A DNA stretch of 64,000 nt, taken from Trichosphaerium sp. ATCC 40318. Lineage: Eukaryota > Protista > Tubulinea. Below, piece after piece: positions 7,965 to 63,800 of this stretch (position 1 is its first letter; every line of letters starts with the position of its first letter). A program made the translations under genes and the position numbers. Below the pieces are notes generated by a model. That model saw only the letters and a program-made list of their open reading frames with translations, was not told where the DNA came from and did not search any database. The stretch lies in the NCBI GenBank assembly GCA_038496445.1, contig JALMLS010000642.1, forward strand, positions 1 through 64,000, given 5' to 3'.

Positions 7965-8912
7965 ATGCCAGCAAGCGCAGCAGAACTAGAAAATGTCAAA
8001 ACAGTTAATAACGCTGTTGGTTGGTTAAATTACTTCCTAATGACGCTTTGCTTTGTCGCATTGATCCAATCACCACTTTGTACAGCGACTATCGTCAACG
8101 TTATCTTACAAACACTTGTTTTCTTGTACTGCGCTGCAATTCCATCCTATCGCACTGGTATAATGTCGTGGGTCGATCTAGCATGGCCTTGGGGCCTTGT
8201 AGCCATGGGCGTACAACAGATATTCTGGACAGCCCAAAACGGTCATTTTGCCAAAGGATACGTTTTCTCTGCCTGTTACCTTCTCGCTGGACTAAGAATG
8301 GGTTTACCTATGCGAGGGTATGTTGTTTACAGTAAAGGGAAGATATCAGAGTTCAAGAGATATCAATTTCATAAAATGTTATGGAAAGAAGAGCACGGAG
8401 AAGGATTTCTTGATACATTCCAAGGAAAAATGCATATGCAAAAAGACATTTGGTATCAAGCTTTATTGAATATCACTCTGTTGGGATTGCCAAGCTATAT
8501 CATTGCTGCTGATACAACAACTAATTTTAGCACATTCGAAATGGTTGGTATTTTTTTATGGATTTTCGGTTTTGCTTTTGAGCACGTGGGTGATTTACAA
8601 AAGAAGGCTTTTATAAAAAAGAACCGCGGAGGCATTTGTAATGTTGGTTTGTGGAGGTATACTAGACACCCAAACTATTTCGGAGAATGGATGGTTTGGA
8701 ACGGACTTATCATCGCTTCAATACCTTCTGCCTTACGGTTGTTAAGTGGATGGCAAGGCGCTGTCATTGCTGGTTGTTTGTTTTATGTTAGCCCAGCTAT
8801 TTATCATATTCTTGTATACTTTACAGGCGCTTTTCCTGCTGAATATATGTCAAAAAGAGAAGGTTGGGAAGAGTATAAAGCAAAGACCAGTATGTTCTTT
8901 CCAAGATGTTGA
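7965..8912 (+). CDS. DUF1295 / steroid 5-alpha-reductase-like membrane protein, intronless
   Basis: 315-aa ORF with several TM segments and motifs WVDLAW, FEHVGDLQKKAF, GLWRYTRHPNYFGEW, EYKAKTSMFFP. Confidence 0.9.
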   Translation: MPASAAELENVKTVNNAVGWLNYFLMTLCFVALIQSPLCTATIVNVILQTLVFLYCAAIPSYRTGIMSWVDLAWPWGLVAMGVQQIFWTAQNGHFAKGYVFSACYLLAGLRMGLPMRGYVVYSKGKISEFKRYQFHKMLWKEEHGEGFLDTFQGKMHMQKDIWYQALLNITLLGLPSYIIAADTTTNFSTFEMVGIFLWIFGFAFEHVGDLQKKAFIKKNRGGICNVGLWRYTRHPNYFGEWMVWNGLIIASIPSALRLLSGWQGAVIAGCLFYVSPAIYHILVYFTGAFPAEYMSKREGWEEYKAKTSMFFPRC

Positions 8913-10043: not shown

Positions 10044-11137
10044 ATGACCACTAATCCTATTCAAATACCTCTCGTATTGATCCTGCTTTCTTCCTTTGTG
10101 ATTGCTTCAATTGCTGTACGAGAAATACAATGTTATATCTATACCAATCACTCCATTGTAGGGCTCGTGCAGCTGTAGCGTCGAATCTAACATGTGTTTA
10201 CCAACGTCTTTCACAGACAGCTGTGATACAGGAGAAGTACCAGTTTGTATTGGCGATCCACCAGGTACTTAATACTGTCGTTGGAATGCTTATTATTATG
10301 TAGGTGATCCGTTCAAGCGATCTAAACGCGAACCTATTTGCAGATGTATATGTGTAGAAATTCCTAATCCGCCACCAACAAAAGCTCCAACACAACCACC
10401 GACTCTAGCTCCGACACCAGATCCATTTGCAAGCCATGACATCTTGAAGATTGATACAAGTTCGTATGATCTAAGAGGGTACACTCCGGTAGGAAGGTAC
10501 TTCAGCCGCACGTGTGACCCTGAAAGTACGTGATAGTATTGTGCCAAGAATTGCCTAATGTTACAACAGCTGACGGCTTATTCTCCGTTAATTCGTACTT
10601 GAGTACACTCATGAATGATCGTCAATTCTGGCCTAATTGTATGTCAACAATTGGAAACATTAGGTTTCTTCACTCTCATTCTTTCTGGTTCAACAATGTT
10701 AACGATGTGAAAAAGTATTTCTCATTCACCTGTCCTTACAACCACATAATTACAGGTACAACTTGTCTGTTTTTGGTGTCATTCTAGCTAAACGTGTCTT
10801 ACCACATCAGGTATACGTTCCACGTTTTATGCCAATGACAATGATCGGCGTTTCAGCTTTCAATGTGCCCCATTAAAGAATAACTATGCTGTAAACGATA
10901 CCCCAAGATTCAGATACCTTACAATTTGGTATTCAAGTTACAATTTTGTCTAGGTAATCGAAACAACTTAGTTTGACTTTTTATAGGGAAACTCAAAGAG
11001 GTTCTTGTGTGCATCCTGGAACCGGAAAATTTGGATTCATTGTTGGTGTCTCTAGTTACTACTCTAATGCTGTCGGTGATCGCCGTTTTGGATTTCTATG
11101 TGCTCTAATTGAAGATGTTGATAACGCACAACAATAG
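10044..11137 (+). pseudogene. Secreted dermatopontin-like protein, copy 1 (six exons); premature TAG at end of exon 5, so truncated or a pseudogene
   Basis: Signal peptide MTTNPIQIPLVLILLSSFVIASIA, Cys-rich domain, Pro/Thr linker, then NDRQFWPNC / FSFTCPYNHIITGIRS...NDRRFSFQCA / GDRRFGFLCA repeats. Exon 5 ends gtc TAG|gtaatc, 2 nt shorter than intact paralogs. Confidence 0.75.
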
Positions 11138-11922: not shown

Positions 11923-13090
11923 ATGACAACTTCTGTTATTCAAGCATTGACAGTCTTTCTGCTTATTTTTAAATTATTCATCAGTACAGTAATTTCGGTA
12001 TGGTAGCAAAGCTGTACATGCGTTTCTCACAATAGATTGATTCTAGGGATCGTGCACCTGCAGTGTTAAAGCCAACATGTGCCTACCAGATTCTTTATCG
12101 GACGCTTGTGGCTATGGTGAACGACCAGAATGTATTGGAGACCCACCAGGTATGTATAAACTAGAAGGTATTACATAGCTTACATTAGCAAAGGTGATCC
12201 TTTCAAGCGTGATGAGATATCCAAACGTAGTTCTATTTGTAGTTGCGTTTGTGTAGTAATACCTAATACTCCACCTACAAAAGCACCAACACCCTCGCCA
12301 ACAAGAGCTCCTACAACAGATCCAACAGCTCCACCAACCATTCCACTTTCAAGCTATGACATCTTATTGGTTAACACAACTGAAGTTGATGATAGAGGAT
12401 TCACTCGCGCGGGCATGGACTTTTATCGCTCCTGTGATTCTCTTTGTAAGTAAAAAGACGCTACCATGTTGTGATTTACCAGTATTTAGCATATGGATTT
12501 GTATCATTTTCCTCGAACTATGACTCAAACTTAGAAGATCGCTCTTTTTGGCCTAATTGTATGCCAGCCAAACAGAATACACACTTTCATAAAAGTGCTC
12601 GGCATTCTGCTCCAAATCATTTTTATTTTAGACGTGTCAATGAATTGAACCATTTTTTCAGTTTTGAGTGTTCTCCGGGTCATTTGATAACAGGTACAAT
12701 AAAACCCATTCTTTTTCTGAATTTTTTCTGATTTGAGTCATGTTCCAGCTATAAAAGGAGAGTACCATTCATTCTATAAAGATCGTTATTTCAGCTTTCA
12801 ATGCTCTGAGTTAGAAAATAGTCCGAATAGATTCAGATATCTGGATACTTGGTGGACAGGGTACAAGAATGAGTACTTGTAAGTCACTCATGCACACACT
12901 GAACATTGGAAGATATGTTAATTTTCGTTCTAGAGAATCTCATTCAACTGCATGCTGGCACGCAGAAACTAGAAGATATGGTTTCATTGTCGGCATTAAT
13001 AGTAGTCACGCTTATAATCGTAATGATAGGCGTTTCAACTTAAAGTGTGCTCTCATAGAAGATGTTGATAATGCTCAAGAATTCGTGTAG
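11923..13090 (+). CDS. Secreted dermatopontin-like protein, copy 2 (intact, six exons)
   Basis: Open after splicing: MTTSVIQALTVFLLIFKLFISTVIS|GSCTCSVKANMC...EDRSFWPNC...FSFECSPGHLIT...KDRYFSFQC...GFIVGINSSHAYNRNDRRFNLKCALIEDVDNAQEFV*. Confidence 0.85.
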
Positions 13091-13536: not shown

Positions 13537-14652
13537 ATGTTAACCCGTGGCATATCGAGTTATCAATCCAGAGTCTACACTTCTCCCGTTCAAGTTTTTC
13601 TCGTTCTTCTTTCTTCATTTGTGGTTGCCACCTTTGCTGTACGAGAGCTATTCTAGGTAGAATCTCATCTAAGCTTTTATTAGGGCTCCTGCAGCTGTAG
13701 TACTCAGGGTAACCTGTGTCTACCATCTATTCCAGATAGTTGTGATTCTGATGAGAGGCCAGTGTGTTTCGACAATCCTCAAGGTGCTTATAATTTCTCG
13801 TGTCATTACTGATTGTAATGTTGATAGGTAATCCCTTGAAGCGAAGCCTAGCTAAACGAGCACCTATTTGTGCTTGCGTTTGTGTAAAAATCCCTATTCC
13901 ACCGACTAAAGCTCCAACATCATCGCCAACACCTGATCCACTGTCTACCTCTGACATCTTGATCGTTGATGTTTCTACATCAAATTATAGAGGATACACA
14001 GAAACAGGAACGATGTTCACACGTGAATGCAAACCTGAAAGTAAGTCACATTAAAAACCAGATTGGGTATTGACTTTGATCTTTTACAGCACATGGATTT
14101 TACAAGTTCAGTTCATTCTTTAGCTCTGTAACCAACGATAGGGCGTTCTGGCCTAGAGTTGTTGGAACGAGGACAAATATTAAGTTCATTGATTCTAATC
14201 CAGTATGGCACAATCACGTTGGCATTTTGAGACAAGATTTCACTTTCGAGTGTCCTAGCAATCACTTGATAACTGGTACAATGAGTCTTTGTGAAAACAC
14301 TTGTACTCATTTGTAATAGGCATGCGTTCGTATTTTTATCCAGTTATCTTTGACCGCCGTTATGATTTTCTATGTGCTTCATTAAAGAACAGCGATGGAA
14401 ATGTAGCACCAAGATTCAGATACCTTACTACTTGGTGGACATAATGATTACAGGTAAGACGCCATGTATGTAAACTGCTTGTTAAACTTGCCTTTTTGCT
14501 GTAGAGGATCACACAACACTCTTTGCCACCACGCTAGTACCAGAAGGCATGGCTTCCTTATTGGTGTAAGTAGCGAATACTCTACCATTTATGGCGATCG
14601 ACGTTTCAAAATTAAGTGTGCTCTAATTGAGGATGTTGATGATACTCAATAA
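13537..14652 (+). pseudogene. Secreted dermatopontin-like protein, copy 3; 8-nt deletion gives TAA near end of exon 5
   Basis: Same six-exon layout. Exon 5 reads ...YLTTWWT-TAA-TGA, where copy 4 has aca agt ttt cgt aat gat. The last exon (14505-14652) is still an open frame. Confidence 0.75.
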
Positions 14653-15304
14653 ACGCCAAACCCTTGTACTGCGACTGCAATAAATCGCTTTCCTTAACGC
14701 CCTATCACGTGATAGTACACCGCACGTGTTTTATGAATGAAGATGTGGACCATTTCAAGCGTTTGGTTGGACTGATCGAGACTATCAATATCGAAGGACA
14801 CAATAGGAAACAACAACAACAATTGCGAGCAGCAATCAAAACATCCCCTCACCCTCCCTAAAATCCTTTTTCTTTTTTTTGTAAAAATTATTTCTTTATT
14901 TTTCCTTCAAACACATTTGCAATTCACACGAGTGTTCTTAAATGTAGAATAAATCCGCTCGTGTGGCTACGCTAGAGCCACCAAAGACTGAGCGTCTTTC
15001 CTCCCAAGCGCGTCTCCCTTATATTGACAATGTTGTCCAATCTAATGTGCTAAACATCAGTTGTCACATTAGAAGGCTAAAACTGTATTAAGTTGTTGTG
15101 GCCACTATAAATTGGTAGGGTATAACAAGTACACATCTTTTTTTAGCCTAAAGAATAGAAACGGACAAACATGGCTCATGAAGATACCAAAGCCATAAAC
15201 TTGGTGATTTGAAAATGGAATTGAGGTTGTTAAAAACACTTGCTAGGCCTTGTTAAAGATTACTTCACTTAAAACAAACTAATTGATGTGTTGTTTTGCT
15301 CAGA

Positions 15305-15983
15305 ATGCTCACTAATACCAATGCTGTCTTAAATCTATTAAACCTTCCAGTTGAGATTCAGCTGGTTATTATCGATTTGGACTCATTTGTGTATTTAAAG
15401 TGGCCGCTTATTTCAAAACGCACAGCAATGACCACAAGGTTCGATAGTGAGATGAACAAGCATGGAAAGTGGCATGTAATGCAACAGTACTGGTAAACAT
15501 GGTATACAAGATGGAGAATGCAGGACATACCACGACAATGGCAAATTAATGAAGCTGGGTACTAACGTTGATGATGAACTACATGGAGAATATAAGAAGT
15601 GGTATGACAATGGCTGCTTGAGGGAGCAGTGTACGTACATCAATGGGATTTAGAAGGAGAAGTTCTGAATTGGAGTAAAAACGGCAAATGGAGGACCTGT
15701 TGTGTCAATGGTGCACTAGAAGGAGATTACTTAATATAACAATGGGAAATTGTTGGAGCAGGTTAATTACAGCAATGGTAAGAAAGAAGGAGAGTACAAG
15801 CGATGGTATAGCAATGGCTACTTGAAAGAGACATGTACCTACATCAATGATAAGCGAGAAGGAGAGTACAAGTATTGGTATAAAAACGAGCGTGAGATGG
15901 AGCACTATAATTACATCAATGATGAAAGACAAGGGAATACAAGACAAGTAACGATGACAATGACAAAGTGTAGTATAAATTAG
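15305..15983 (+). pseudogene. Frameshifted F-box-like/MORN-repeat gene
   Basis: NLLNLPVEIQLVIIDLDSFVYLKWPLISKRTAMTTRFD aligns with the 830 ORF. MORN repeats (HGEYKKWYDNGCLREQCTYING, EGEYKRWYSNGYLKETCTYIND) continue across frameshifts near 15495, 15650 and 15935. Confidence 0.85.
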
Positions 15984-18258: not shown

Positions 18259-18349
18259 AATAAATAAAATGTTACTAAGCTGTTTGTTACAACGCTTCTT
18301 GGTAGAATACTGGCTGGTTTGTTGAAGTCGCAGTACCACTGTTTGGCGT

Positions 18350-18725
18350 TTATTGAGTATTGTTGACATCCTTAATAGCACTGAATTTGAAATAGTGATC
18401 ACCATAGGTGTAGTACTTGCACCAACGAGGAATCCATACCTTGGTACCTGTGTTTGTTAGAAGTACATGCGCTCCTTTGCAAAAGGTCAAGATGAACATG
18501 TTTTTATAAGCAAGCCTTACCTAATCATTACGAAAACTTGTCCAAGTAGTAAGGTATCTGAATCTTGGCGCTACATTTCCATCGCTGTTCTTTAATGAAG
18601 CACATAGAAAATCATAGCGGCGATCAAGGACAGCTGGATAAAAATACAAACGCATACCTAATACAATAATGAGTACACGTGTAGCCATTATTTTACCTAA
18701 GACATTTGTAATTGGCACTCGAAAA
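18350..18725 (-). pseudogene. Dermatopontin-like copy 4: 3' fragment, an inverted partial duplicate of copy 3
   Basis: GMRLYFYPAVLDRRYDFLCASLKNSDGNVAPRFRYLTTW is nearly identical to copy 3 exon 5. Shared 3' end actcaataaacgccaaac. The last exon is decayed and the 5' exons are absent. Confidence 0.85.
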
Positions 18726-27524: not shown

Positions 27525-28989
27525 TTACACTTGTTGTAGTATTTTGAGCCACTCTGGGGCTAAATCAGTCTTTAGTTCATGAGCAATCGGCTTCTCCAAT
27601 AATCTCAACTCAAAAGGTCCTTCTGTCAGCACTTTCCTGTCTTTCTCCTACAGCAACAAAATAAGCAAAACGGCCGTCCAAAAAAATTATCATTTTCAAA
27701 GTTAATCGTATCACATGACACAATTCAAGGACATTTACTCCTTACCCAGTCAAATAAACCAGAACCTGTGCTATCTGCGTATTGGTTCAGTTCAAGAACA
27801 TGTACTTTGTCTCCATGCGCTATAAAATCAATGACATAATCTGATGTACCAAGATCTTTTGTTTCTTTGTTTGAAAGCAATCGAGCTTTAAAGACATCAT
27901 TATAAAATGTCAATATGAGTTTTCTCAAGTTTTCTCTTTGTTCAAGTAACTCAGGAAAGAAGCACTGTGTAAAGTATTGTGATACAGCAGTAAGTTCTCC
28001 TTTGTGGACAAAACCTACAATGTGGCGCATCAGTCAACTTGTTTCTGATTTAAAATTTGGCAAGTTTCGTTTCGTACCTCTGAACTCTGCGCTCAACGGA
28101 ATGTCTAGCCATGGCCTTATGATTATTTCAGTTGTGAAGTCATCAGGAAACTTCAAGTCAAGTTCAATATCAAACAAAATTCGCTTACTGAGAACAAACA
28201 ACTCAAGCGCTTCTCTAAAATTGCTGACCTAAAAACGCAATCAAAGAATGTTGCACTTGAAGACCTTACCTTCATGCAATCAATCTGCGCTTTATATAAC
28301 GCGCACAACTTACTGTTTGCTCTTAAGACTTTGTCTTCTTCATCCTTCTTGGCGCTTGGGTTCTTGTTAAACAAGTTGAAAGTCTTCGGATGTCTAAAAG
28401 TCACCTAAAAAAACAACCAGTAAGCATTTGACGATATCCACGTGACTCACATCTTTAGCACTTCTGCATGACAATTTTATCATTACACCAGAACAATCTC
28501 CAAGCCTTTTATCATTAACAAGAATATCAACGTCCTTCTCTAGCTTTGACAAGTGTTCATCAAATTTTTCTTTCGACAGGTCAACTTCTTTACTTTTTTG
28601 GTGTTGTTTACAAAGAGCCAGTAACGATTTTCCTTCTTCGACCGTAAGAGGACGTGATAACGTTGTAGGCGTCTCCTAAGCGATATTAATATCAAATATC
28701 TATTTTTGAGTCCGCGCCTCGGGCTGTTTGAACAAGAAGACCCTGGAAAACGTATGAGTAGTCATTGGAGAGTATTATCGTACCATTTCTCCATTGTTGT
28801 GTTGAAATAGCTCTCTTTTAGTTTTTGAACCTCTTCTGGCGTTTGTATATTACTCTCCACGCGCATTGGAAGCTTTTTAACTACCTAAAGCGTAATTTAA
28901 GCCAATACGAATCCTACACCCTTTGTATGTACCGTTTCCACTTTATTTTGCGTCATCTTAGCTCTCTTTAAAGCGCTGGCATTAAACAT
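27525..28989 (-). CDS. Cdc123/D123-like ATP-grasp protein, multi-exon
   Basis: KLSCRSAKD motif, DIPLSAEFR|GFVHKGELTAVSQY, DYVIDF...VLELNQYADSTGSGLFDW|EKDRKVL. Confidence 0.8.
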
Positions 28990-35446: not shown

Positions 35447-36842
35447 ATGGAAAAAGAAACAAGCAAATCCGACGTATCGGACGCTTCCTCCATGCATGGG
35501 AGCACAAAAAGTGACACCGAAGAGTCGTTAATAATTGACATGAACACTAACTCTGAATGCCCTATTTGTTGTTTGGAACCCGAAAACGGACTTATAAGTC
35601 TCACCTGCGATCATAATTACTGTAATGAGGTACAACAATAATTCTGTTTTTAACTACGAAGCAATTAACAGTACAAAGTGTCTGAGCGTATTCGTGCGTA
35701 TAAAATACAGAGAAGATAACGTTCTAGACATTCCTTGCCCAGACCCTACATGCAAACATTTATTAACAAACGAAGAGGTGCGGTAAAACCTTTAGAATAC
35801 CAGAGGTAACAAAGGAAATAGGTAGCGCCGTATTTAGGTGAACAGGAAAACAGAAAGTTTAAAATGAAGCGAAAACGGCAGCATATGCGCACTAATCCTG
35901 ATTGTAAATGGTACCAAAGCGAAATAATTCTGTTTACGCTTTTTTTCAAAAAACGCGTAAAAAATTTTCCAAACCAACCTTTCAATACATTGAGTACTTA
36001 CAACATACTACCCAGGTGTCCTGAATGTGACATGGAAAATTTAAAGGTAGATAATGAACGAGATATTGAGTGTGCCTATTGCGAAACATCATATTGTTTT
36101 CAATGTGGTTTAAAGTCTCATCCTGGTGAACCTTGTGATGCTGACGAGATGTTTGAGCAGTATGCCAGTGAGATGAACATTAAGAAGTGTCCTAAATGTG
36201 GCCTGGCGTACGTTGACATGCGTTGTTTATTCAACGATTAATTATAATTTGTCTTGCAGTGATATTTGCGTTTGAATGCGTTTTTCGCGTTTTTACCATA
36301 ATCACTTTTTGGCGGTTTATTTCTGCATTTCTTGTCTTGTTACTTGCTTATTATCATCACTAGAACTCAAAAAAATAGTGGATGTAATTCTATGGATTGT
36401 AAAAGGTGTGGCGCCGAGTGGTGTTGGGTTTGTGGTGATGAGATAACAGATCCATTTACGCACTACAGAAAAGGTACGATTTTTTTTTTGTTGAAACACT
36501 TTTCTCATAAACCCACGTGATATGCACGCTTTTGTGTTTAACGTGAAGCGTATTGTTTCAAAGTGTATTTTAACAAAATATTTAGGTGCTTGTAAAGGAA
36601 AATCAGGGCATAGTTCGGGTGAATGGATAGGTATTTGGTCTGTGGCTATTTGTATTTTGTGTGTTGGTATTATTTGCCTTCCAGTCACAATCATTGCTAT
36701 AATAGTTTATGCGTGTTGTTGTGCGAAAAAGAAGCCAGCTAGAAAGCCTCTTTGGTCTGCAGATGATGACACAGTTATTATTGATACAGAAGCAATACAA
36801 GAGAATCTTCCTCACGTGGAAACACGTGTGGAAACTTTGTAA
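35447..36842 (+). CDS. RBR (RING-IBR-RING) E3 ubiquitin ligase with C-terminal TM helix (RNF144/RNF217-like architecture)
   Basis: RING1 CPICC...CDHNYCNE|C...CPDPTC; IBR CPEC...CAYCETSYCFQCGLKSHPGEPC; RING2 KKCPKC...GCNSMDCKRCGAEWCWVC; hydrophobic segment IWSVAICILCVGIICLPVTIIAIIVY. Confidence 0.9.
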
Positions 36843-37130: not shown

Positions 37131-39161
37131 ATGACTCGTGTTGGCTTTGTTTTGCTGGCTGTTACGTTTCTTTGCTTGTCTGATGCTCAAATACTTAGTA
37201 ATATCACTCAGATTATTAGATCTGAAGGATACGTATGGTTTTTTGATTTCAAGCGCTTATTGTTAACGTATCTACTAGCCAGCAGAAATACACAAAGTGC
37301 AAACAGCGGATGGCTATATCCTTACCATGAATGTACGTCTTACAATACATACAAGCCGTTAACGGCACTTGGCCAACATTTACAACACCGAACTTTCCAT
37401 TTCCTCATTTTTTTTTTAAAATAGCGCGTGCCTCACGGGAAATCATCCACTAAGGCGTCTAAAGGAGCTGTATTATTTCAACACGGATTATTCGATTCAT
37501 CGCACGTTTTAAAGCTATTAATCACGTTCTTATGATGAAGTTAGGTTCGCAGGTGTATGTAATCCTCCTCCTGAAGGCCTTGCTTACTTTTTCGCTGATG
37601 CCGGATACGACGTTTGGTAAAGTCTTTCCAGAAGACCCAAGTGTACTTACCGGATTGTTATAAATAGGTTGGGTAATAATAGAGGGAATGGTATTAGTAT
37701 GGAACATGTGAAATATACACCAAAGGATAAAGAGTTTTGGGATTTTTCGTACGACAATTTTGTTTTTGATTGTAATTTTTTTGATCTGACATCCTTCAGG
37801 TGGGATGATATGGGTCAATATGATCTTCCAGCACAATTAGATTATATCATTAAAACAACCGGACAAAAGAAAATACCATACATGGGCCACAGTCAGGCAC
37901 AAAGACTAAAAATAATCAAGATGTATTAATTTTATATGCAGGGAACCGTTCAAGCTTTTTCCGGGTTTTTGAACCCATCAACTGCTGAAAAGGCTTCCAT
38001 TTTTGTTGCTTTAGCACCTGTTGCTTGGGTAAATCATATAACAGCAAAGCTAATGAGAACTCTTGGTGAATTAGACCTCAGCCAACTACTTGAGGTTTTA
38101 GGGTATGTTTTTTATTATTTTTTTTATTCTTACGACCACGTGTCTTTCTTCTTACGATTTCTCTACATTATAGAGTACACGAAGTTGATATCCCTACGCT
38201 TATACATCACTTTTTCCCTGATCTCTGCGACGTTGATCCATCGTGAGTTTTTCGTCAAGTTTCTTTACACTGAAGTTTTGAATGAAACTAACTTTTATTT
38301 AGCGCATGTGAGTTCGTTTTAATAGCTTTCGCTGGTGACTTTACATACAAGAATGCTAGTCAAATTCCATTTTATGTAAATTTTGAACCTAGCCCAACAT
38401 CAACGAAAAATTTGATTCACTGGTACGCTTTTCACCTCTTAACATTTCTTCGTGTTAACTAAAAAATCACATGATATTGATGAGTGATGAACTACACTAT
38501 AAATTCGAGCTAAGGATAGCTCTTTTTTGGTTATTTATTACGTGCAAAATCACGTGTTGTGTTCGCTCGGAACAGAGTTACATTCGGTTCTGGTTTTTTA
38601 TGTTGATGTTCTAACTTGTTTATTATTTAGGACTCAAGGTGTTAAAGAGAATGTATTTCAAAAGTATGACTATGGCGACCTTAAGAACTTGGAAAAATAC
38701 CATCAACTAAGACCGCCTGCTTATGATCTATCTAAGTTTCCAACAAGTCTACCTGTCGCTTTGTTTACAGGAAGTATTGATGCTTTGGGTACTATCTTAA
38801 GCGTTATTTAAGTCTATTTCTTCTAATTGCTCTAGCTGATCCAAACGATGTCAAACAGATTCTAGACCATTTACCAATAAAGCCATTTGTCCATAATGAA
38901 CCGGTACGTCTTTTCATTATTTTCGAAAGTACTTTGCTTCCAAATGCGAACAAGATCAATTCAAGATGTTGACTATCTGGCTTTGTTTCATTTTTTTGGC
39001 TTCTTTTTTTTTGTTTCATTTTTCTTGGCTTGCTAACAATATTGTAGACTTTCGGTCATCTTGATTTCACTCTTGGCTATACAGCGTATGAGAAGGTTTA
39101 TTCAGTTGCAATGAAACAGATTGAGGCAGCGAATGCTAAACTTAAAATTAGCATTGAATAG
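37131..39161 (+). CDS. Lysosomal/gastric acid lipase family (alpha/beta hydrolase), secreted
   Basis: Signal peptide; TADGYIL, QHGLFDSS, LAYFFADAGYDVWLGNNRGN, FWDFSWDDMGQYDLPA, catalytic GHSQ|G, D-A-L-A-D and FGHLDF. Confidence 0.95.
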
Positions 39162-39319
39162 TGCTTGTAATAAAGAACGCCTACGAGTTAAAAATGGTAT
39201 GTGTTAAGGAATACGCTGTTTTGGGCACCTATTAAAACCAGATTCTGGCGTGTTTAATACTAAGTTGATTTTTAAAACATTATATTTATTGCGGAGATAA
39301 AACAAGTAATGAGATAGCC

Positions 39320-40522
39320 TTAAACACTTGCATTATCGATGTCTTCAACAAGAGCGCATTTGAATCTGAATCGGCGATCACCATATGTACTGGAGTAGTA
39401 GCTACTCATACCTATGAGGAATCCTAACTTTCCTAGTCCCACATGCCTGCATGGAGTCGTTTGCGCTTCCCTTCAAAAAAAACTGTGAGAACACGTAAGT
39501 CGTTTTTGATATTGTTACCTGTAGTTACTCTGATATGTTGTCCACCATGTTGTAAGGTATTTGAACCTTGGTGTGTCATTGACAGCATAACTGTTTCTCA
39601 ACGAAGCACATTGAAAACTGAAACGGCGATCATCAGCATCTGAGTAAAAGTAGGAACGCATGCCTATTACAAAAGTGTCATGTCAGTTCTGATTAAAAGG
39701 ATAAGCAGAGGATTTTTTCATACCTGTAATCAAGTGATTGTGAGGACACGTGAATGAGAAATACTTTTTCAAATCATTAACATTGTTGAACCAAAAAGGT
39801 CGATTATGGAGGAACTTAATATTGTCACGGGTTGCCATACAATTAGGTAAGAATGCTCTATCATTAATATTTGGATCAAAAACTGAATAGAACCAGTGAA
39901 TACCTTCAGCTATTGATACACGTTGGTTAGCCACAATTAGAATATCATTATTGATAACGTACTTTCAAGCTTGCACGTCCTACTGAAGTACCTCCCAACT
40001 TGAGTGTATCCCCTAGTATCTGTATCGGCGCCAGTCATCAAGACATCTCGATTTGAAAGGGGATGCGGTGTTGGAGGGCTTGTTGGCGCTGGTGTTGGCG
40101 GTTTTGTTGGTGGAGGTGTTGGAGGTTTTGTTGGCGCCTTTGTTGGTGCTTTCGATGGTGGTGGTGTATTAGAGTTTCCTACACAAGAGCAGCCGCACAC
40201 AGCACGTTTTGAGAGATCACGTTTGAAAGGATCACCTTGTTTAACAGTTAATAAAACTCAACATTGGGTTCTTTCATAGATGATATGTATGTACCTGGTG
40301 GATCTCCAGAGCATACTGGTATTTGTCCAGGATCGCAAGATGAGAATGAAACTGGTAAACACATGTTAGATTGAACACTACAGGTACATGAACCCTAGAA
40401 CAATCCTATTGTCAGACAGATTTTTATGTTACTTCTACTATCATATGTACCGCAATTGTAGCAATCACAAATGAAGAAACGAGAATCAATACGATAGGTA
40501 TTTGAATGGGAGAAGTGGTCAT
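39320..40522 (-). CDS. Secreted dermatopontin-like protein, copy 5 (intact, six exons)
   Basis: Open after splicing: MTTSPIQIPIVLILVSSFVIATIA|GSCTCSVQSNMC...NDRAFLPNC...FSFTCPHNHLITG|MRSYFYSDADDRRFSFQCA...YGDRRFRFKCALVEDIDNASV*. Confidence 0.85.
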
Positions 40523-43044
40523 CGTTGTTTGAAATGAAGTGGTTTATATTGATTTAGTTCAATACAATTTCATGAGACGCTGACGATTCGATGTGTTCAC
40601 GTGAAATTGCAGAACAAAAGTTCACCTTTTTCCACCTTGGCTTCTCTAAAATCCGTTCATACAAGTTATATTAGGCTTAGAGATTCCATACCTAATACCC
40701 AAAATGCATCATGCATTTATAAACAAACCTCATTCAAGCGCGAAAAAAATACCCACTGATACAACTGAAAATCATGTTAGTGAACTGTTATCGTTTGTAC
40801 CATTGTTCAGTTTCAGTAAAAATGCTGACGTTGATGACAACGAACATAAATGAAACGAAGCGTTACCTAATGGATTGTGCTAACTCGCTTCTTTTTTCTT
40901 ATTGGCAGCAAAGAAATACAAAGAGCTGAGTTCAAGCTTGAACGAGTTTTTTCGAGAGGCATTCGTAGAACAACTTTCTTTCTCATAATTTTCAGAAAAT
41001 AATGGTTGCTAAAGCACTACACTTTTAAAGCAAAATTATTCGTGCTCTTGACAATAGTTTTAATGATTGAAGCTTTATATTATAGTAGCCATACATACTA
41101 TGAAATACTTACCTCAAGTATTATATTCAAGTCTAGTGATGTAGTCTACACCAACTCTAAATAATAAGTTAATTTTTTTTGATACTTTTATACATGGTGT
41201 TTAGCTAAACTATGTCAACTCATTGCACATATTTTCATTTTTGTTATTGTCACTTTGTATAGATGTAAATAGTTGTATTTAATAGCATCATTGGTCATTA
41301 TTTAAAAGTAAACTCCAATAGAGTACCTCATATGTGGAGTTTGTTACTGAGATTTCTACATGTTTTTTCTTTACCAATGAGTATGGTACAATACCACTAT
41401 ACATGGCAATAGCGTTTGTGGCAAAGCAGGCTTAAAAAAGAACATGGCTTTAACTATTAGAAGTAAATAGGTACCCAGACACTGTTCGAAAATCATTAGG
41501 GTTTTTTCAAAAAAACCGCAACTACGGAAGTGCTAGGCCTAGCAACAATAAGTGCGATGTTTTTATTGTGTTTGAGAACATGTTTTCCTTTTGCAGATAC
41601 GAAATTTGGTTGGCACTTGACATAATGATGTAGCCTTATCTAGTTCTGTGATTGTGAAAGTGACTTTAAAGACTTACACTTCAAAATAAAATCTCGTCTC
41701 GCCTCCTAAATGGAGGAGCAGCGTTTTTATGGCATGTGGTGTACGCAGTGTCAGTGTTTACACCGTCCTAGGGCAGGTTAGGGAGGGTTATTTTTTTAAT
41801 ATGGCTGGCTTACTCTGAGCAAAAAAAGCAAAAAAATTGATTGTTTACATCATAGTGCCGGAATAATATTCTTATTTTGAAACGTAACAAAGGGTCAAGA
41901 GTCTTGTAAGAAGTCGTGTAAAGTAAAGAAAGCGACCACTGGTATAGTAATTTTGCTAAATGTTTTATTTTAGGTACATTCAGAGAACACATATTAACGA
42001 CGATTAATGACATTTATTAACGATGTAGTTAAAACCAGTCATTGAATGAGAGTAAAGGCTTTGAGTGTTACATATTTTGAAGCATACATTGCGATTCTTG
42101 GTTTGCATGCGGAGGGGTGTTGTTCAAATCCACATGTAAAAGTATTGCTGAAATGTAACGATTTTGCAACGGCATCCTGCGGTGTCTATACTTTCGTTTC
42201 ATGACCGCTATGTCATTTACATGCGTCAACAGTAGCGAGAAGGCGGAGAAAGTAGATTCTGAGAAATCGCCAAAACCTTTTTTACAATGGTAGAAATCAC
42301 TATTGTTTCGGCAACTATACGAACTCTACACCACTTGAAAGGGAGAAAATATATATGGTAAAACGTTTTCACTTTCAAAATCGTTTTTGGCAGGCTTAGC
42401 TGGCCGCTAGAGACAAATCACATAAAAAAAAATTGTGTTGAATTTTAGCGAATTTTCTGATTCTGCTAGTAGTTTTTCTATTTATAAATCTAAAACACGT
42501 GAAAGGTACGCTGCCAATAGGATGTCCATAATCTAACTAGCAAAATTAGGACGTGCCCGTAAAGCAAGAAGGCTTAGCACGCACATAAACGAATACGAAG
42601 GCTATATTGCTTTTCGTAGTTGTTAACTGGTTTGATCTAACGCATTAGCCATTTACCGCGTTAGTAAGCTGTATTTTAGCATTATCAATCGATACACGTA
42701 AGTTAAACAAACGAGAGCCTTCTGGAACAAGAAGCCAACTGTGTGGTGAATAAGCTCATATTTTTTACCGCTGTCCACTTAAATCGTTTCCGGGACAACA
42801 TTTGCTGTCAATTTTTTCGACATTTTGCAAACAAAAACTCTTGCCGTTTTGGGTTTTTACTTTCGCTCAATGCCTCTTGAAACACGTACAAATATAGTCA
42901 CTCTTGGCTCTTGTGCACAAAAGGCTGTACAATGGGTAGAAATTTTTAAGTGGATGCAAACATATTCTGTTTGACAAAAATATGCCCTTGTAAGTGGTTT
43001 TCTAATGTTGGTTTTTTTTAGATTTGTTTGTTGGCGTACAAAGG

Positions 43045-44637
43045 ATGTCTTGTTCTACAAATTTACTGGATCTTCCTTGCGAAATTCAAGAGTATATTTG
43101 CACTTTTGGTATTGAAGCATTTACAAAATTTCATACGCTGAGTAAGAGAGCAGCAGTTAATACACATTACAATAAAGAATTAGAAAAGAAAGGAAAATGG
43201 ATAAGGTGGTACAAAAGTGGCAAAGTACGGGCTCATGAATATGTAAAAAATGGACTATCTGAAGCATGGTATGAAAGTGGAACACTTGAGAGCCAGTGCA
43301 ACATGGTTAATGGTAAAGCCAATGGCGAATTAAAACTGTGGTATGAAAATGGACAACTCAAAAAGCAATATGTGTATGCTGATGGTAAAATCAATGGTGA
43401 ATTCAAAGAGTGGGATGAAAATGGACAACTCAAAGAGCAGTGTGTGTATGTTGATGGTAAACTCAATGGTGAATTCAAAGAGTGGCATGAACATGGACAA
43501 CTCAAAGATCAATATGTGTGTGTTGATGATAAAATCGAGGGTGAATCCAAAGAGTGGTACAGTAACGGACAACTCAAAGATCAATGTGTGTATGTTAATG
43601 GCAAAATCAATGGCGAATTCAAAGGGTGGCATAGTAACGGACAACTCAAACAGCAGTGTGTGTATGTTAATGGTAATCTCAATGGTGAATACAAAGAGTG
43701 GCATAGTAATGGACAACTCAAAGAGCAATATGTGTATGTTAATGGTAAAATCAATGGTGAATTCAAAGAGTGGTACAGTAACGGACAACTCAAAGAGCAA
43801 TATGCGTGTGTTGATGATAAAATAGAGGGTGAATCCAAAGAGTGGTATGAAAGTGGACAACTCAAAGATCAATGCGTGTATGTTGGTGGTAAAATCAATG
43901 GCGAATTCAAAGAGTGGCATAGTAATGGACAACTCAAAGAGCAATATGTGTGTGTTGATGGTAAAATCAATGGTGAATCCAAAGAGTGGTACAGTAATGG
44001 ACAACTCAAAGAGCAATATGCGTGTGTTGATGATAAAATAGAGGGTGAATCCAAAGAGTGGTATGAAAGTGGACAACTCAAACAGCAGTGTGCGTATGTT
44101 GATGGTAAACTCAATGGTGAATTCAAAGAGTGGCATGAAAATGGACAACTCAAACGGCAACTTCAAGTAAAGGTTAAGTGTGTTGCTAATGGTAAAGCCA
44201 ATGGTGAATACAAAGAGTGGTATGAAAGTGGACAACTCAAACAGCAGTGTGTGTATGTTAATGGCAAAATCAATGGTGAATACAAAGAGTGGCATGAAAA
44301 TGGACAACTCAAAGAGCAATATGTGTATGTTAATGGTAAAGTCAATGGTGAATTCAAAGAGTGGTACAGTAACGGACAACTCAAAGAGCAATCTGTGCGT
44401 GTTGATGGTGAATTCAATGGTGAATTAAAAGAGTGGTATGAAAGTGGACAACTCAAACAGCAGTGCGTGTATGCTGGTGGTAAACTCAATGGTGATTCCA
44501 AAGAGTGGTATGATAATGGACAACTCAAACGGCAACTTCAAGTAAAGTTTAGATATGCTGATGGTAAAATCAATGGTGAATTCAAAGAGTGGGATGAAAA
44601 TGGACGACTCACAGCGAAGACTTTGTCAGGAAACTAA
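43045..44637 (+). CDS. F-box-like N-terminus plus 18 tandem MORN-variant repeats, intronless coding region
   Basis: ATG at 43045. NLLDLPCEIQEYIC F-box-like motif; repeat consensus GKINGEFKEWYSNGQLKEQCVYVD. Confidence 0.9.
   Translation: MSCSTNLLDLPCEIQEYICTFGIEAFTKFHTLSKRAAVNTHYNKELEKKGKWIRWYKSGKVRAHEYVKNGLSEAWYESGTLESQCNMVNGKANGELKLWYENGQLKKQYVYADGKINGEFKEWDENGQLKEQCVYVDGKLNGEFKEWHEHGQLKDQYVCVDDKIEGESKEWYSNGQLKDQCVYVNGKINGEFKGWHSNGQLKQQCVYVNGNLNGEYKEWHSNGQLKEQYVYVNGKINGEFKEWYSNGQLKEQYACVDDKIEGESKEWYESGQLKDQCVYVGGKINGEFKEWHSNGQLKEQYVCVDGKINGESKEWYSNGQLKEQYACVDDKIEGESKEWYESGQLKQQCAYVDGKLNGEFKEWHENGQLKRQLQVKVKCVANGKANGEYKEWYESGQLKQQCVYVNGKINGEYKEWHENGQLKEQYVYVNGKVNGEFKEWYSNGQLKEQSVRVDGEFNGELKEWYESGQLKQQCVYAGGKLNGDSKEWYDNGQLKRQLQVKFRYADGKINGEFKEWDENGRLTAKTLSGN
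43312..44634 (+). repeat. Coding tandem repeat, 72-bp unit x18 (two units extended by 12-15 bp)
   Basis: Near-invariant cores aaagagtgg and ggacaactcaaa recur every 72 nt. Units 12 and 17 share an RQLQVK insertion. Confidence 0.95.
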
Positions 44638-45474
44638 CTTCCCGCTACACAGTGGAGTCAATAACAAACCATACAATGTTAATAACATTAAAGTTTAGAT
44701 TTAGATTTTGACATATCAGCTGTTTGGCATTCTCATTTATTTCCACCAATGTGATACAAATGAAAAACATATTTGAAATGTACCTGGAGCGCACCCTATA
44801 AAACGGTTTGAAATAATCAATTTTGCGGCTAAAAGCCACTCACTGGAGTTTATGCTGAAGAGTCTAAACCTTAGTGGAATTAGTTTTGATAAGTGCAGGT
44901 GCGCTAAGCTCCATACCATGTTCAGTTTGTAGAAATGAGTGGATGGGTACTTCAGAAAAGTGTAATAACGTAACATTGTCATAGCCTATTAGTAGCGTAA
45001 AGAAGGCCTTAACGGAGTTTGATAATGTTCGACCTTGTTAGGTTTTCGGCTGTTATTCCTCTCAAAGATAATCTAATCGTGACAAATGTTTAAATTTGAA
45101 ACTGTACCCACCTCGTCAATGAAGTCTTGGTAGTGAAATAACGGCTACGACGGTACCACGACCACCACCACCTCTACAGTTGTTTCCACTACTCCTACCT
45201 TTGTTTTCACGTGGACAAAGAAATTTCTGTTGGTGCTCGTGATTGCGAGTCAGCTATGTCAGTTTTTTTTTATTGAAAGTGAAGTTAACATATCAGATAC
45301 CCCCCGTATTAAGACCATAATGATTGGAGCGATTTGACCGGGATGCATCATGCATTTTGAAAAAAGAGAAAAATAAGTGAACTATCACAATTTCACATGA
45401 CCCACGTGAATCGTCAGTTTCTCATGAAATTGTATTGAACTCTTTTAATATAAACCACTTCATTTCAAACAGCA

Positions 45475-46622
45475 ATGACCACTTATCCCATTCAAATACC
45501 TATCGTATTGATTCTCGTTTCTTCATTTGTGATTGCTACAATTGCGGTACATATGATAGTAGAAGTAACATAAAAATCTGTCTGACAACGGGATTGTTCT
45601 AGGGTTCATGTTCAATCTAACATGTGTTTACCAGTTTCATTCTCATCTTGCGATCCTGGACAAATACCAGTATGCTCTGGAGATCCACCAGGTACATACA
45701 TATCATCTATGAAAAACCCAATGTTGAGTTTTATTAACTGTTAAACAAGGTGATCCTTTCAAACGTGATCTCTCAAAACGTGCTGTATGCGGTTGCTCTT
45801 GTGTAGGAAACTCTAATACGCCACCACCATCGAAACCACCAACACCGGCGCCAACCAAACCTCCAACACCTCATCCGCTGTCAAGCGTTGATACGTTGAG
45901 AATTAATCACGGAACACGTGATAGAAGGGGATATACACAACCGGGACTGTACTTCAGCCGTACTTGCAATCCTCACAGTATGTGCACTACATGTTGATTA
46001 ACGTTTCTTTCTAACGCACGTTTCTCAACAGACCAGGGTATATTTTGGTTCTACTCATACTTGAGCGCAGTCATGAATGATAGAGCATTCTTTCCAAGTT
46101 GTTACGGAACTTTTGGAAGTGTTCATTTTCTTCACTCCGATCCGTTTTGGTTCAACAATGTTAATGATTTGAAAAAGTACTTCTCATTCACGTGTCCTCA
46201 CAATCACTTGATTACAGGTATGGAAAAATCCTCTGCTTATCCTTTTATCAGAACTGACATTGACGCTTTTGTAATAGGCATGCGTTCCTACTTTTACTCA
46301 GATGCTGATGATCGCCGTTTCAGTTTTCAATGTGCTTCGTTGAGAAACAGTTATGCTGTCAATGACACACCAAGATTCAAATACCTTACAACATGGTGGA
46401 CAACATATCAGAATGATTATAGGTAAATACGCTTCATCTTATGTATGAACATTATAATTAAACCCTTGTAGGGGTGACCAGATAACTTCATGCGTTCATG
46501 CACAAACAGGAAAGTCAGGATTTCTTATTGGTATCAGTAGCTACTACTCCAGTACATACAGTGATCGCCGATTCAGATTCAAATGTGCTCTTGTTGAAGA
46601 CATCGATAATGCAAGTTTTTAA
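45475..46622 (+). pseudogene. Secreted dermatopontin-like protein, copy 6; 11-nt deletion in exon 2, rest open
   Basis: Reads ggttcatg^ttcaatctaac where copy 5 has ggttcatg-tacctgtagtg-ttcaatctaac (near 45610). Exons 3-6 remain in frame to ...EDIDNASF*. Confidence 0.8.
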
Positions 46623-47134
46623 GGCTATCTCTCATTACTTGTTTTATCTCCGCAATAAATACAACCTTGTCAGTTGAGTAATTCTTTATTTATGAAAAAA
46701 CTTTGAATATTAGCCAATTTAGCTACTAAACTAGAAAGGCTACAGAGAAAGGGCGGTAGCTCAACAGCACGTTACAGTTACATATAACTCTTTGTATTGT
46801 GATGAGAACAGGTAGTCCCCGCTGCTAAAAAAATGGACGACCCACCAGCCCAAACCGCAATTGCGCCTTAACTTCTTTATCAAGAAAATTGTTCAGAAAA
46901 ATTTATAAAGACTCTACTTTCTTGTAAACCCACATCTTCAGTTGTCCCTCACACATGTTTGCTTCTGACTGTGACTATGACTGTTGATGTATAGTACGAG
47001 GTGTGTTTCTCAGAAACTGGCTTAAGATGGATTCACAAACGTCTGCTAACCTGTTATTTATTTGCCAATTCATAAATTGTACAATTACAGGTTTTCAAAT
47101 AGTATGTAATAGAATAAGATAAAAACAGTTCTTA

Positions 47135-60871: not shown

Positions 60872-63800
60872 CTACGACTTTTGAAGCTGGCGACTCACTA
60901 AAAAACAATTATTTACAAACAAACAAAAATCAAAAAACTGCACTACTGGTTTTCTTGTTCAAAAAAGTTGGCGTACCGAGCTTAGTGTATAACCCTCCTT
61001 TTGCTAATAATTCTGTATGTGTTCCCCTTTCTACTACTCTACCTTGATCTATAACTACAACTTCATCCGCTGTCTTAAAGAAGAAATCAGAACCAAATTA
61101 TTTATTTTTCTTTGTTTATCGAGAATTATTAACGTACTTGAACCGTACTCAGTCTATGTGCTATTACAAGTACTGAGCGGCCTTCTTTGTCTCTTAATAA
61201 TTTATCAAGAGCCTCTTTAACAAGATACTCGCTTTCTGAATCAAGAGCACTTGTCGCTTCATCCAGCAGTAAAATTTTTGGATCTATAATTATGATTTAG
61301 AATGTATTGACCAAACTGGGAAGTCATCTTTTAATACGTACTTCGTATCAACGCTCTAGCAATAGCTACACGTTGTTTCTGTCCACCAGAGAGGCGCACA
61401 CCGCGTTCGCCAACCTTTGGAAAAGACTAAGACAAGAACACATATTTTTCTCTGTTTGTATATTACCTTTGTATCATAGCCGTCTGGGAATTCTAATATA
61501 AAGTCATGTGCATTTGCCATCTTGGCAGCCGCTACTACACGTTCTCTTTTATCTGCCTCATCTCTGAAAAAGGATTCTGGCATGCCATACGCGATGTCTG
61601 TACACAGGCATCAACAAAAACGTGAAAAGAAAAAACGTACTGTGGTCGATGGTTGTACTGAATAAATCAGGTTCTTGTGATACAAGTGCCATATGTTGAT
61701 GAAGTTGCACTGGATCTAATGATTTTGTGTTCGCACCATCAAGTAATATTTCACCGCTCTTAGGATAGTAGAAGAGCTAGCATTATTTTATTAGTATGCT
61801 ATTGAAAAAAGAGAAAAACTAATGTTCTTTTTACCTCAATTAAATTGGCAATAGTCGATTTTCCACCACCTGAACGACCGACTAGTGCTGTGACCTTTGC
61901 AGGACGGAGTTCTAAGTTAATACCATGAAGTACAGTTACATCTTTACGAGTAGGATATGCGAATTCAACCTTGTTAAACTTAGTTTATAAAGAGCAAAAA
62001 AATAGAAAAAGAAGGTACATTATCAAACGTGATTTCTCCATTCATATCGCTGACAGGAATACCTCCCTTAATACGAACTTGTGGTTTTCTGTCCATAAGT
62101 GCAAATACACGTTCACTTGCACCAATGGCCTACAGACTGACTCAGTTTTTCAAAAAAACTTTCGATTCTTACCTTCATAAAGTCTCCATACAACCCAGCG
62201 ATTCCACCAAAGGAGAATGCAACTGTCAATGTATACAATATAAAACTTGTAAGGGCACCAGGTGTCATCTTTTCTTTCACTACTAATGTTCCTCCATACC
62301 ACAGAACGCCAGTAATAGCTAAATTAGCAAGAAAAGCAGCGGTAGCCTAAACAATTTATCAATAAGCACGTGACTTCGGTTTCTTTTTTTTTTGGTAGTA
62401 AAGGTTTGCTGCGTACCGCAAATCCTCCTTGGAGCCATGCTCTTGATTTTGCGAGTTGGTATGACTCTTCAACTGCGCCTTTGTACTTTTCTACTTCATA
62501 GCTTTCTCCTGCAAATGCACGGACTGTTCTAACGTTCGCAAGTGCATCTTCAGCAAAAGAAGCAGCCTGTGATTGAGTTTTAAAATAGGGGAAAAAGAGT
62601 ACATTACGTACGTTTGCAAGTGCATCTTGAACTTTAGTTGAAAAAACTTTTATGTATTTTCCATAAATGAAAGCGCCAACAAATATGAGCGGAAGTACAC
62701 CTAACATTACCTAAAAAATATATATGAGCTAACACTGCTGATAATTTGTAGCGTAAAGTTGTCTGTGATGACACGTTACAGCGGTCAGAAAATCGTTTTT
62801 TTGCGGTTTTTTTTTATTTAACGGTTTTTTTCTCGTACCAGTGTCAAGTTCCATGACAGATAAAATAAAATACCTATGCCGCCAATACAATTTGCGCTAA
62901 ATCTTAGTCCCATTGATACATTTGCAGTACAAGTATTTTGTAATACAGACTAAAAAGAGAAATAAGAATAAAATGAGAAAATCTAAATGAAAAATGATTC
63001 TTGAAGATTTAAGAAAGCCACGTACACAGTCTGATGACAAACGATTTATCAACTCACCAGTCTTCGATTGATCAAAGAATCCTATCTCTTGAGAAAGAAT
63101 ACGCTCAAAAAGATTTCCACGTAAACGAGCAACAACACGTTGTCCTTTCAAAAGAAAGTTAGTCTGAGTTCAAAAAAACAGCAGATTTAGTTTTTCCTAA
63201 GTGACATATGACACTATGCTTGTCAAAGTTTGGTGTTGTAAGAGCGTACCAGCTATATTAAACAATGAAGCACGCAAGAATGTGAATACTGAGCCGATCA
63301 AAAAGAAAATAATCAAACCTATTGCAGCTTCGCCTAGTAAGCCCGACTACGCGTATTGTTAGAAGAAAAGTGCTCAAGGTACATTTACTTTTACCTTTTT
63401 CTGAACCATAACTGAATCTATAATGTTCCCCATTACCTTTGGGATCACCAAAAAACTGCCTGAACCGATTAATAATGAGATTGTGCCACCAAGAATCAAA
63501 AGCCATTCTTTCTTCGCTAATCCAAGTATACGCATGAACGTAGCGTGGTTCACTTTTTTTTTAGGTTCTTCCGCCGTTTTGTCATCTTTTTGTTTTTTCG
63601 AGCCGTTTTCTCCGTTCTACGCCGAGTTAACTAATGTTATACAACGCTACGCCATTTAAAGTGTAATACGGGTTTCGGATAATTCTTTTTTCCTAAACAG
63701 CGAAACGTACCGAATACCGTTTTAACAATGGTGCATCATCTTCATCACTCTCCTGCCAACTGTCATGAGCCATATTTCGACATTGTAAGCGAAATAGCGT

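Follow-up and report, generated by a model that had tools for sequence, protein, structure and literature searches.

A 64,000-nt stretch of Trichosphaerium sp. ATCC 40318 (contig JALMLS010000642.1, positions 1–64,000; hereafter the window) carries six copies of a gene for a dermatopontin-like protein, and two of them, copy 5 (39323–40522, minus strand) and copy 6 (45475–46619, plus strand), lie head-to-head within an inverted repeat. Self-BLAST and global alignment within the window delimited the two arms at 39283–40609 and 45388–46661. The arms (~1.3 kb) are about 85% identical overall (mean divergence 0.15), but the match is interrupted, with identical runs of 72–109 nt inside blocks of 260–480 nt. 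The 4,778-nt spacer between them (40610–45387) has an F-box-like/MORN gene as its sole long open reading frame (ORF).

Copy 5 is intact: its six exons (40451–40522, 40295–40394, 39963–40235, 39724–39909, 39519–39663 and 39323–39470, minus strand) form an open frame of 308 aa, with GT-AG boundaries at all introns. Copy 6 has a six-exon layout like that of copy 5 (45475–45546, 45603–45691, 45750–45977, 46032–46217, 46278–46422 and 46472–46619, plus strand) and is broken in exon 2. The introns of both copies are GT-AG and 48–60 nt long. Intron 4 of copy 6 (46218–46277; 60 nt) has no in-frame stop, so that exons 4 and 5 form one ORF, and the corresponding intron of copy 5 does have a stop.

The remaining members are copy 1 (10044–11134, plus strand), the nearest outgroup to copies 5 and 6, whose exon 5 has a frameshift and a stop at its end; copy 2 (11923–13087, plus strand), intact, with 306 aa; copy 3 (13537–14649, plus strand), with a frameshift at the end of exon 5; and copy 4 (18310–18700, minus strand), a decayed 3′ fragment of exons 5–6 and the inverted partner of copy 3. 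Two of the six copies (2 and 5) are thus intact and four (1, 3, 4 and 6) are broken, and every copy in the window except copy 4 has its own 5′ end.

Block mosaic of copies 5 and 6

Self-BLAST and global alignment bore out the alternation of near-identical and strongly diverged blocks that an initial annotation of this DNA had described. In the order of transcription (minus strand for copy 5, plus strand for copy 6), block A (40114–40590 in copy 5, 45407–45871 in copy 6) runs from the promoter to the exon 3 linker. This near-identical block is real, but it extends further than first delimited, to 40114 and 45871. V1 (39802–40113 and 45872–46139) covers the end of the linker, dermatopontin repeat 1 and intron 3; block B (39530–39801 and 46140–46411) covers repeat 2, intron 4 and the start of repeat 3; V2 (39414–39529 and 46412–46528) consists of intron 5 and the middle of repeat 3; and block C (39283–39413 and 46529–46661) holds the end of repeat 3 and the 3′ untranslated region up to AATAAA.

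Within block A the two copies differ at 13% of positions in the promoter (40523–40590), at 1.1% in the core (exon 1 to intron 2) and at 5.7% in the tail (5′ part of exon 3). Mismatches amount to 40.5% in V1, where there is also a 48-nt indel in the Pro/Thr linker, 2.6% in B, 40.2% in V2 and 4.6% in C. Introns 1, 2 and 4 are almost identical (96, 98 and 93%), as had been reported. The accompanying statement that introns 3 and 5 do not align holds for intron 5, with no alignable similarity between copies 5 and 6 (P = 0.72), but not for intron 3, which aligns at 63% identity with a score that 0 of 1000 shuffles reached.

At 382 neutral-like sites (intron and fourfold sites, copy 5 vs. copy 6), differences reach 4–5% in blocks A and B, against about 50% in V1 and V2. 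The observed clustering of differences at these sites was not attained in any of 100,000 permutations, and protein constraint alone therefore cannot explain the mosaic. At the protein level, block B shows 0 amino-acid differences in 69 codons, and V1/V2 are 52% identical, with the frame, the cysteines and the DR-x-F motifs kept in both versions.

The break in copy 6, an 11-nt deletion early in exon 2 after about 45608, leads to a stop at codon 30. Its presence was confirmed as first described, and beyond it the frame is open to the end of the gene (the lesion being read with X). The deletion lies in block A, in a tract that conversion swept not long ago, between short direct repeats; because it is flanked by identical runs of 103 and 106 nt, it is young. 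We see only a small chance that the deletion alone is an amplification or assembly error. One base after the early stop there is an in-frame ATG (45617–45625), which is ancestral, being found also in copies 1, 2 and 5; re-initiation at this codon would give a product without the signal peptide.

Age of the duplication and of the exchanges

Synonymous divergence (dS) between copies 5 and 6 is 1.38 in V1 and 0.84 in V2 (nonsynonymous divergence, dN, 0.43 and 0.38, respectively), and 0.05–0.11 in blocks A, B and C. Since the V1/V2 values equal the divergence of copies 5 and 6 from copy 1 (dS 1.06–1.56), the duplication must be old. Site patterns joining copies 5 and 6 relative to copy 1, compared with the two other patterns, were 97:2:3 in block A, 77:3:3 in B and 27:4:1 in C; in the islands they were 38:37:45 in V1 (star-like) and 20:12:14 in V2. 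Trees agreed, with support of 96–100 for the grouping of copies 5 and 6 in A, B and C, and none in V1.

The near-identical blocks also differ among themselves in divergence, and hence in age (chi-square P = 4e-5 with the promoter, 0.04 without it), and the changes derived since the last exchange split about equally between the two copies. Weak homology continues for 60 nt past block A (P = 0.006), and this residue, together with the alignable intron 3, is what is expected of an old full duplication. Beyond block C there is no similarity between copies 5 and 6, and the match ends sharply at the polyadenylation signal. V1 and V2 share no tract with any other copy in the window. The earlier argument that a single duplication followed by drift cannot produce such a pattern is upheld: exchange between copies 5 and 6 happened repeatedly. 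Judged from the sequence, the history of the pair is one of an old duplication, followed by several conversion tracts between its members.

The V1 and V2 islands coincide with the parts that change fastest among the other paralogs: copies 1–3 alone are also less conserved there (identity 0.42 against 0.55; P = 0.007 when sites were permuted and 0.056 with circular shifts). The ratio of nonsynonymous to synonymous differences (pN/pS) in V1 and V2 together is 0.54 (confidence interval, CI, 0.39–0.73), which indicates purifying selection on average and a copy 6 that was functional for long. A second inverted pair, copies 3 and 4 (14297–14684 vs. 18318–18682), is arranged tail-to-tail and has a conversion-like tract over exon 5, with 93% identity in the exon 5 core, 70–75% in intron 5 and the start of exon 6, and 83% at the end. 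One member is a dead fragment, and this weaker high-low-high pattern falls at the same places as in copies 5 and 6.

A neutral toy model with divergence-dependent conversion and a 20-nt exact seed yielded at least two islands in 16–41% of runs at conversion/mutation ratios of 60–100, with a mean divergence like that observed; rates below the stable range gave no mosaics. The parameters of the model are free, and it demonstrates plausibility only.

We therefore favor, with a probability of about 0.8, the reading that copies 5 and 6 arose by an old inverted duplication and have since undergone recurrent ectopic gene conversion, which has ceased in the segments that evolve fastest. The arms, 5–7 kb apart and inverted, could pair, and break repair would repeatedly copy tracts of tens to a few hundred bases from arm to arm; the footprint of this process is visible in the blocks, and from it we infer the mechanism. 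Conversion would persist where the arms are alike and stop where divergence outruns copying, namely beyond the Pro/Thr linker, which is repetitive and carries the 48-nt indel, across repeat 1 and around intron 5. In theory, a conversion tract is halted by substitutions or indels that disrupt pairing (PMC3924837). A patch past the divergence threshold would no longer be convertible, which would leave islands of old divergence between freshly homogenized blocks. Copy 6 would have been functional for most of its history, until a recent deletion between short direct repeats put it out of frame, the usual end in this birth-and-death family. Now and then a crossover between the arms may invert the spacer, as can happen with any inverted repeats, but this would be accidental rather than a regulated switch.

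Several points weigh against this reading. The islands follow background variability only modestly, mosaics appear in the toy model, whose parameters are free, only in one band of rates, and the evidence comes from a single strain. Selection may also keep two different repeat-1 faces.

Gene product, family and surroundings

The product of copy 5 begins with a signal peptide, followed by a Cys-rich segment and a Pro/Thr linker, and carries a three-repeat dermatopontin domain at residues 134–298. Matches to the Pfam family DERM (PF14704) were obtained exon by exon or with a natural unspliced read-through: exons 4, 5 and 6 of copy 5 each match with E values of 6e-6 to 3e-4, and the read-through 46034–46420 of copy 6 scores 52.9 bits, above the curated cut-off of 28.3. 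Joined translations, with breaks set to X or N, were used in local alignments, in tblastn on the window and in a profile of the database matches. As in PF14704, there are three repeats with a DR-x-F/W motif and cysteines. Copies 5 and 6 thus resemble known dermatopontins in the signal peptide, the three repeats with S-x-(H/Y/F)...D-R-x-F-x-x-x-C motifs and the conserved cysteines; unlike these, they are amoebozoan and have an extra Cys-rich N-terminal segment and the Pro/Thr linker.

From the signal peptide and the dermatopontin domain, the copy 5 product is probably a secreted adhesion or glycan-binding protein. A database homolog is predicted to fold entirely into beta structure, with three groups of strands that resemble one another (predicted local distance difference test score, pLDDT, 85), and its model shows a weak likeness to beta-prism domains (best Z 7.6, against about 3 for jacalin lectins), which suggests a binding role for the dermatopontin-like product. 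A toxin reading was dropped: the match to a Vip3 domain (Z 7.6, root-mean-square deviation 3.7, 9% identity) concerns the model of the database homolog and indicates no more than a beta-prism-like fold.

A phmmer search of 46034–46420 against 1.84 billion representatives found no ortholog, only distant dermatopontin-domain proteins and repeat noise; the best database relatives are 29–40% identical. A literature search on dermatopontin and amoeba found no description of the family, and the word dermatopontin did not occur in the accessible portion of the supplementary text of the Trichosphaerium genome paper (PMC10521059).

In copies 1 and 4, a TAG ends exon 5 just before the donor (10951–10953 and 18521–18523, respectively) and the frame is 2 nt short. 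Copy 3 is 8 nt short of frame, a few bases upstream of the copy 1/4 lesion site. Three of the six copies thus carry a lesion in the final 20 nt of exon 5, the spot where block B ends. An alternative genetic code was ruled out: the lesions are frameshifts, and the genes end in normal TAA or TAG.

The F-box-like/MORN-repeat gene in the spacer (43045–44637, plus strand; PF07661, E 3e-77) is an intronless passenger of 530 aa, built of units of about 72 nt with about 80% mutual identity. It has relatives in the window at 830–1450 and, decayed, at 15330–15950; the decayed gene lies between copies 3 and 4, as the intact one does between copies 5 and 6. F-box/MORN genes are scattered through the window, and in Trichosphaerium they have been described as giant-virus-derived (PMC10521059).

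The window has a GC content near 37% and short introns, which, like the F-box/MORN genes, agree with the published description of Trichosphaerium (PMC10521059). Pfam matches to neighboring exons include D123 (27725–28030), IBR (35864–36241), DOCK-C2 (58081–58503) and ABC_membrane (62324–62707), by which the surroundings of the copies in the window appear to be ordinary housekeeping genes. A putative lipase-like gene, recognized by eye and not confirmed by Pfam, appears to end near 39160, tail-to-tail with copy 5. An intronless DUF1295 (steroid reductase-like) gene occupies 7965–8912; its named best matches are bacterial, at about 40% identity, and a homolog search returned matches 38–43% identical and mostly bacterial, so that lateral transfer is possible. 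Exact-sequence look-up of the MORN and DUF1295 proteins in databases returned no record.

Selection, inversion and the proposed switch

The strongest competitor of plain patchy conversion, still the less likely of the two, is that the same conversion operated and selection held the islands apart: V1 (repeat 1) and V2 (middle of repeat 3) would confer different binding specificities, and converted alleles would be removed. That V1 is one structural repeat of a beta-prism-like domain, that frame, cysteines and DR-x-F motifs are intact in both versions, and that block B lacks any amino-acid difference while V1/V2 are only about half identical would all suit such selection, for which a peak-of-divergence model has been described (PMC3924837; PMC2588116; compare red/green opsin exon 5). 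Against it, pN/pS is well below 1, the toy model yields islands without selection, copy 6 has since been lost, and the island edges fall at the linker indel and at an intron. Selection of this kind would supplement the conversion explanation and not replace it.

An unregulated flip-flop, in which ordinary homologous recombination inverts the spacer at a low rate, as in mammalian palindromes, and nuclei or strains differ in orientation and in chimeric alleles, is rather unlikely. The identical runs within the blocks offer substrate, and elsewhere spacers have been turned round by crossovers between inverted arms (PMC8327919), but the arms are short and interrupted, and the assembly has a single orientation. 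Primate X/Y palindromes have a comparable layout, with inverted gene copies round a unique spacer, arms kept alike by conversion and a spacer that a crossover would invert (PMC8327919); their arms, however, measure tens of kb and are >99% identical, against 1.3 kb and about 85% for copies 5 and 6, which are known here in one orientation.

It is improbable that the whole gene underwent a recent inverted duplication and that V1 and V2 of one copy were later overwritten from a third, distant paralog. The sharp end of similarity at the polyadenylation signal would agree with this, but the divergence among blocks ranges from 1% to 13%, there is no donor among copies 1–4, and two conversions from a 40%-diverged donor are unlikely.

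More doubtful still is an assembly artefact, in which amplification chimeras or cross-mapped polishing made the identical blocks or the deletion. The published genome was obtained from nuclei amplified by multiple displacement amplification (MDA) and assembled with Canu, Pilon and Redundans (PMC10521059). In MDA, chimeras form at short overlaps and are mostly inverted, at reverse-complementary overlaps within 10 kb (PMC9984789); because MDA itself yields inverted chimeras at such repeats, flipped reads in the published data would prove nothing. The position of the deletion between direct repeats also fits an artefact. However, each block has differences that set the two copies apart, with derived states about as many in one as in the other, 60%-identical sequence cannot be merged by polishing, and the neighboring long ORFs are intact. 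An artefact is plausible for the deletion alone and hardly for the blocks.

The initial annotation had proposed a programmed inversion or conversion switch with one expressed variant at a time, and had correctly remarked that no recombinase is visible. The geometry is right: a crossover in block A past the deletion would flip the spacer (4,778 nt, not the 4.6 kb first given) and so place the unbroken 5′ half in front of the 3′ part of copy 6, which is open downstream of the lesion, and the promoters of the two copies are alike. Such a switch is nonetheless the least credible of the readings, since (i) in a Pfam scan and ORF search, no unspliced ORF in the spacer or elsewhere in the window proved to be a site-specific recombinase; (ii) no short recombination sites were found at the block edges, with no 6-mer common to three edges and no dyad of at least 7 bp in either copy; (iii) only two to four variants could arise; (iv) a similar pattern exists at pair 3/4, with its decayed copy 4; (v) Trichosphaerium is multinucleate (PMC10521059), which blurs the logic of one variant per cell; (vi) the variable parts are those that are not exchanged, the reverse of diversifying conversion, and show no excess of amino-acid change (pN/pS as above) and no exchanged tract; and (vii) exclusivity hangs on one recent lesion, whose kind is frequent in the family and which the conversion process itself could remove or pass on. 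Without edge sites, a recombinase or an amino-acid excess in V1/V2, neither a switch nor a diversifying cassette was borne out.

Bacterial shufflons and the Hin, Gin and Cin systems have invertible segments in which one 5′ part is joined to alternative 3′ parts by a site-specific recombinase at short sites. Copies 5 and 6 are formally alike in geometry, but they have long degenerate homology, no recombinase among the unspliced ORFs of the window and no short sites. Mosaics of trypanosome variant surface glycoproteins (VSG) and of avian immunoglobulins arise by segmental conversion among paralogs, including pseudogenes, with a large donor archive and a single expression site (see also bioRxiv 10.64898/2026.09.05.749481). 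Segmental conversion among paralogs, including pseudogenes, also marks the family studied here. The likeness to VSG mosaics drawn earlier nevertheless fails, because in copies 5 and 6 the constant parts are converted and the variable parts, with their pN/pS of 0.54, are not exchanged; there is no single expression site, and no large silent donor archive was found in the window, which has six copies, two of them intact.

The closest parallels are duplicates under ectopic conversion with islands of divergence (Fawcett and Innan, 2011, PMC3924837; Osada and Innan, 2008, PMC2588116; the red/green opsins), which likewise are old paralogs with homogenized introns and synonymous sites, tracts of tens to hundreds of bases and sharp diverged patches in coding sequence. 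Unlike these, copies 5 and 6 are inverted head-to-head, with two islands and one broken copy.

A recombinase-free inversion through block A at a useful rate, by which different nuclei of the multinucleate cell would express the copy-5 or the copy-6 binding face of the secreted protein from the sole unbroken 5′ half, is very hard to credit. If true, a free-living amoeba would possess a phase-variation switch driven by homology, and only with frequent inversion and chimeric mRNA would the pair be notable. Dermatopontin-domain proteins outside animals are of modest side interest, and the pair would stand as another clear example of patchy conversion between inverted neighbors.

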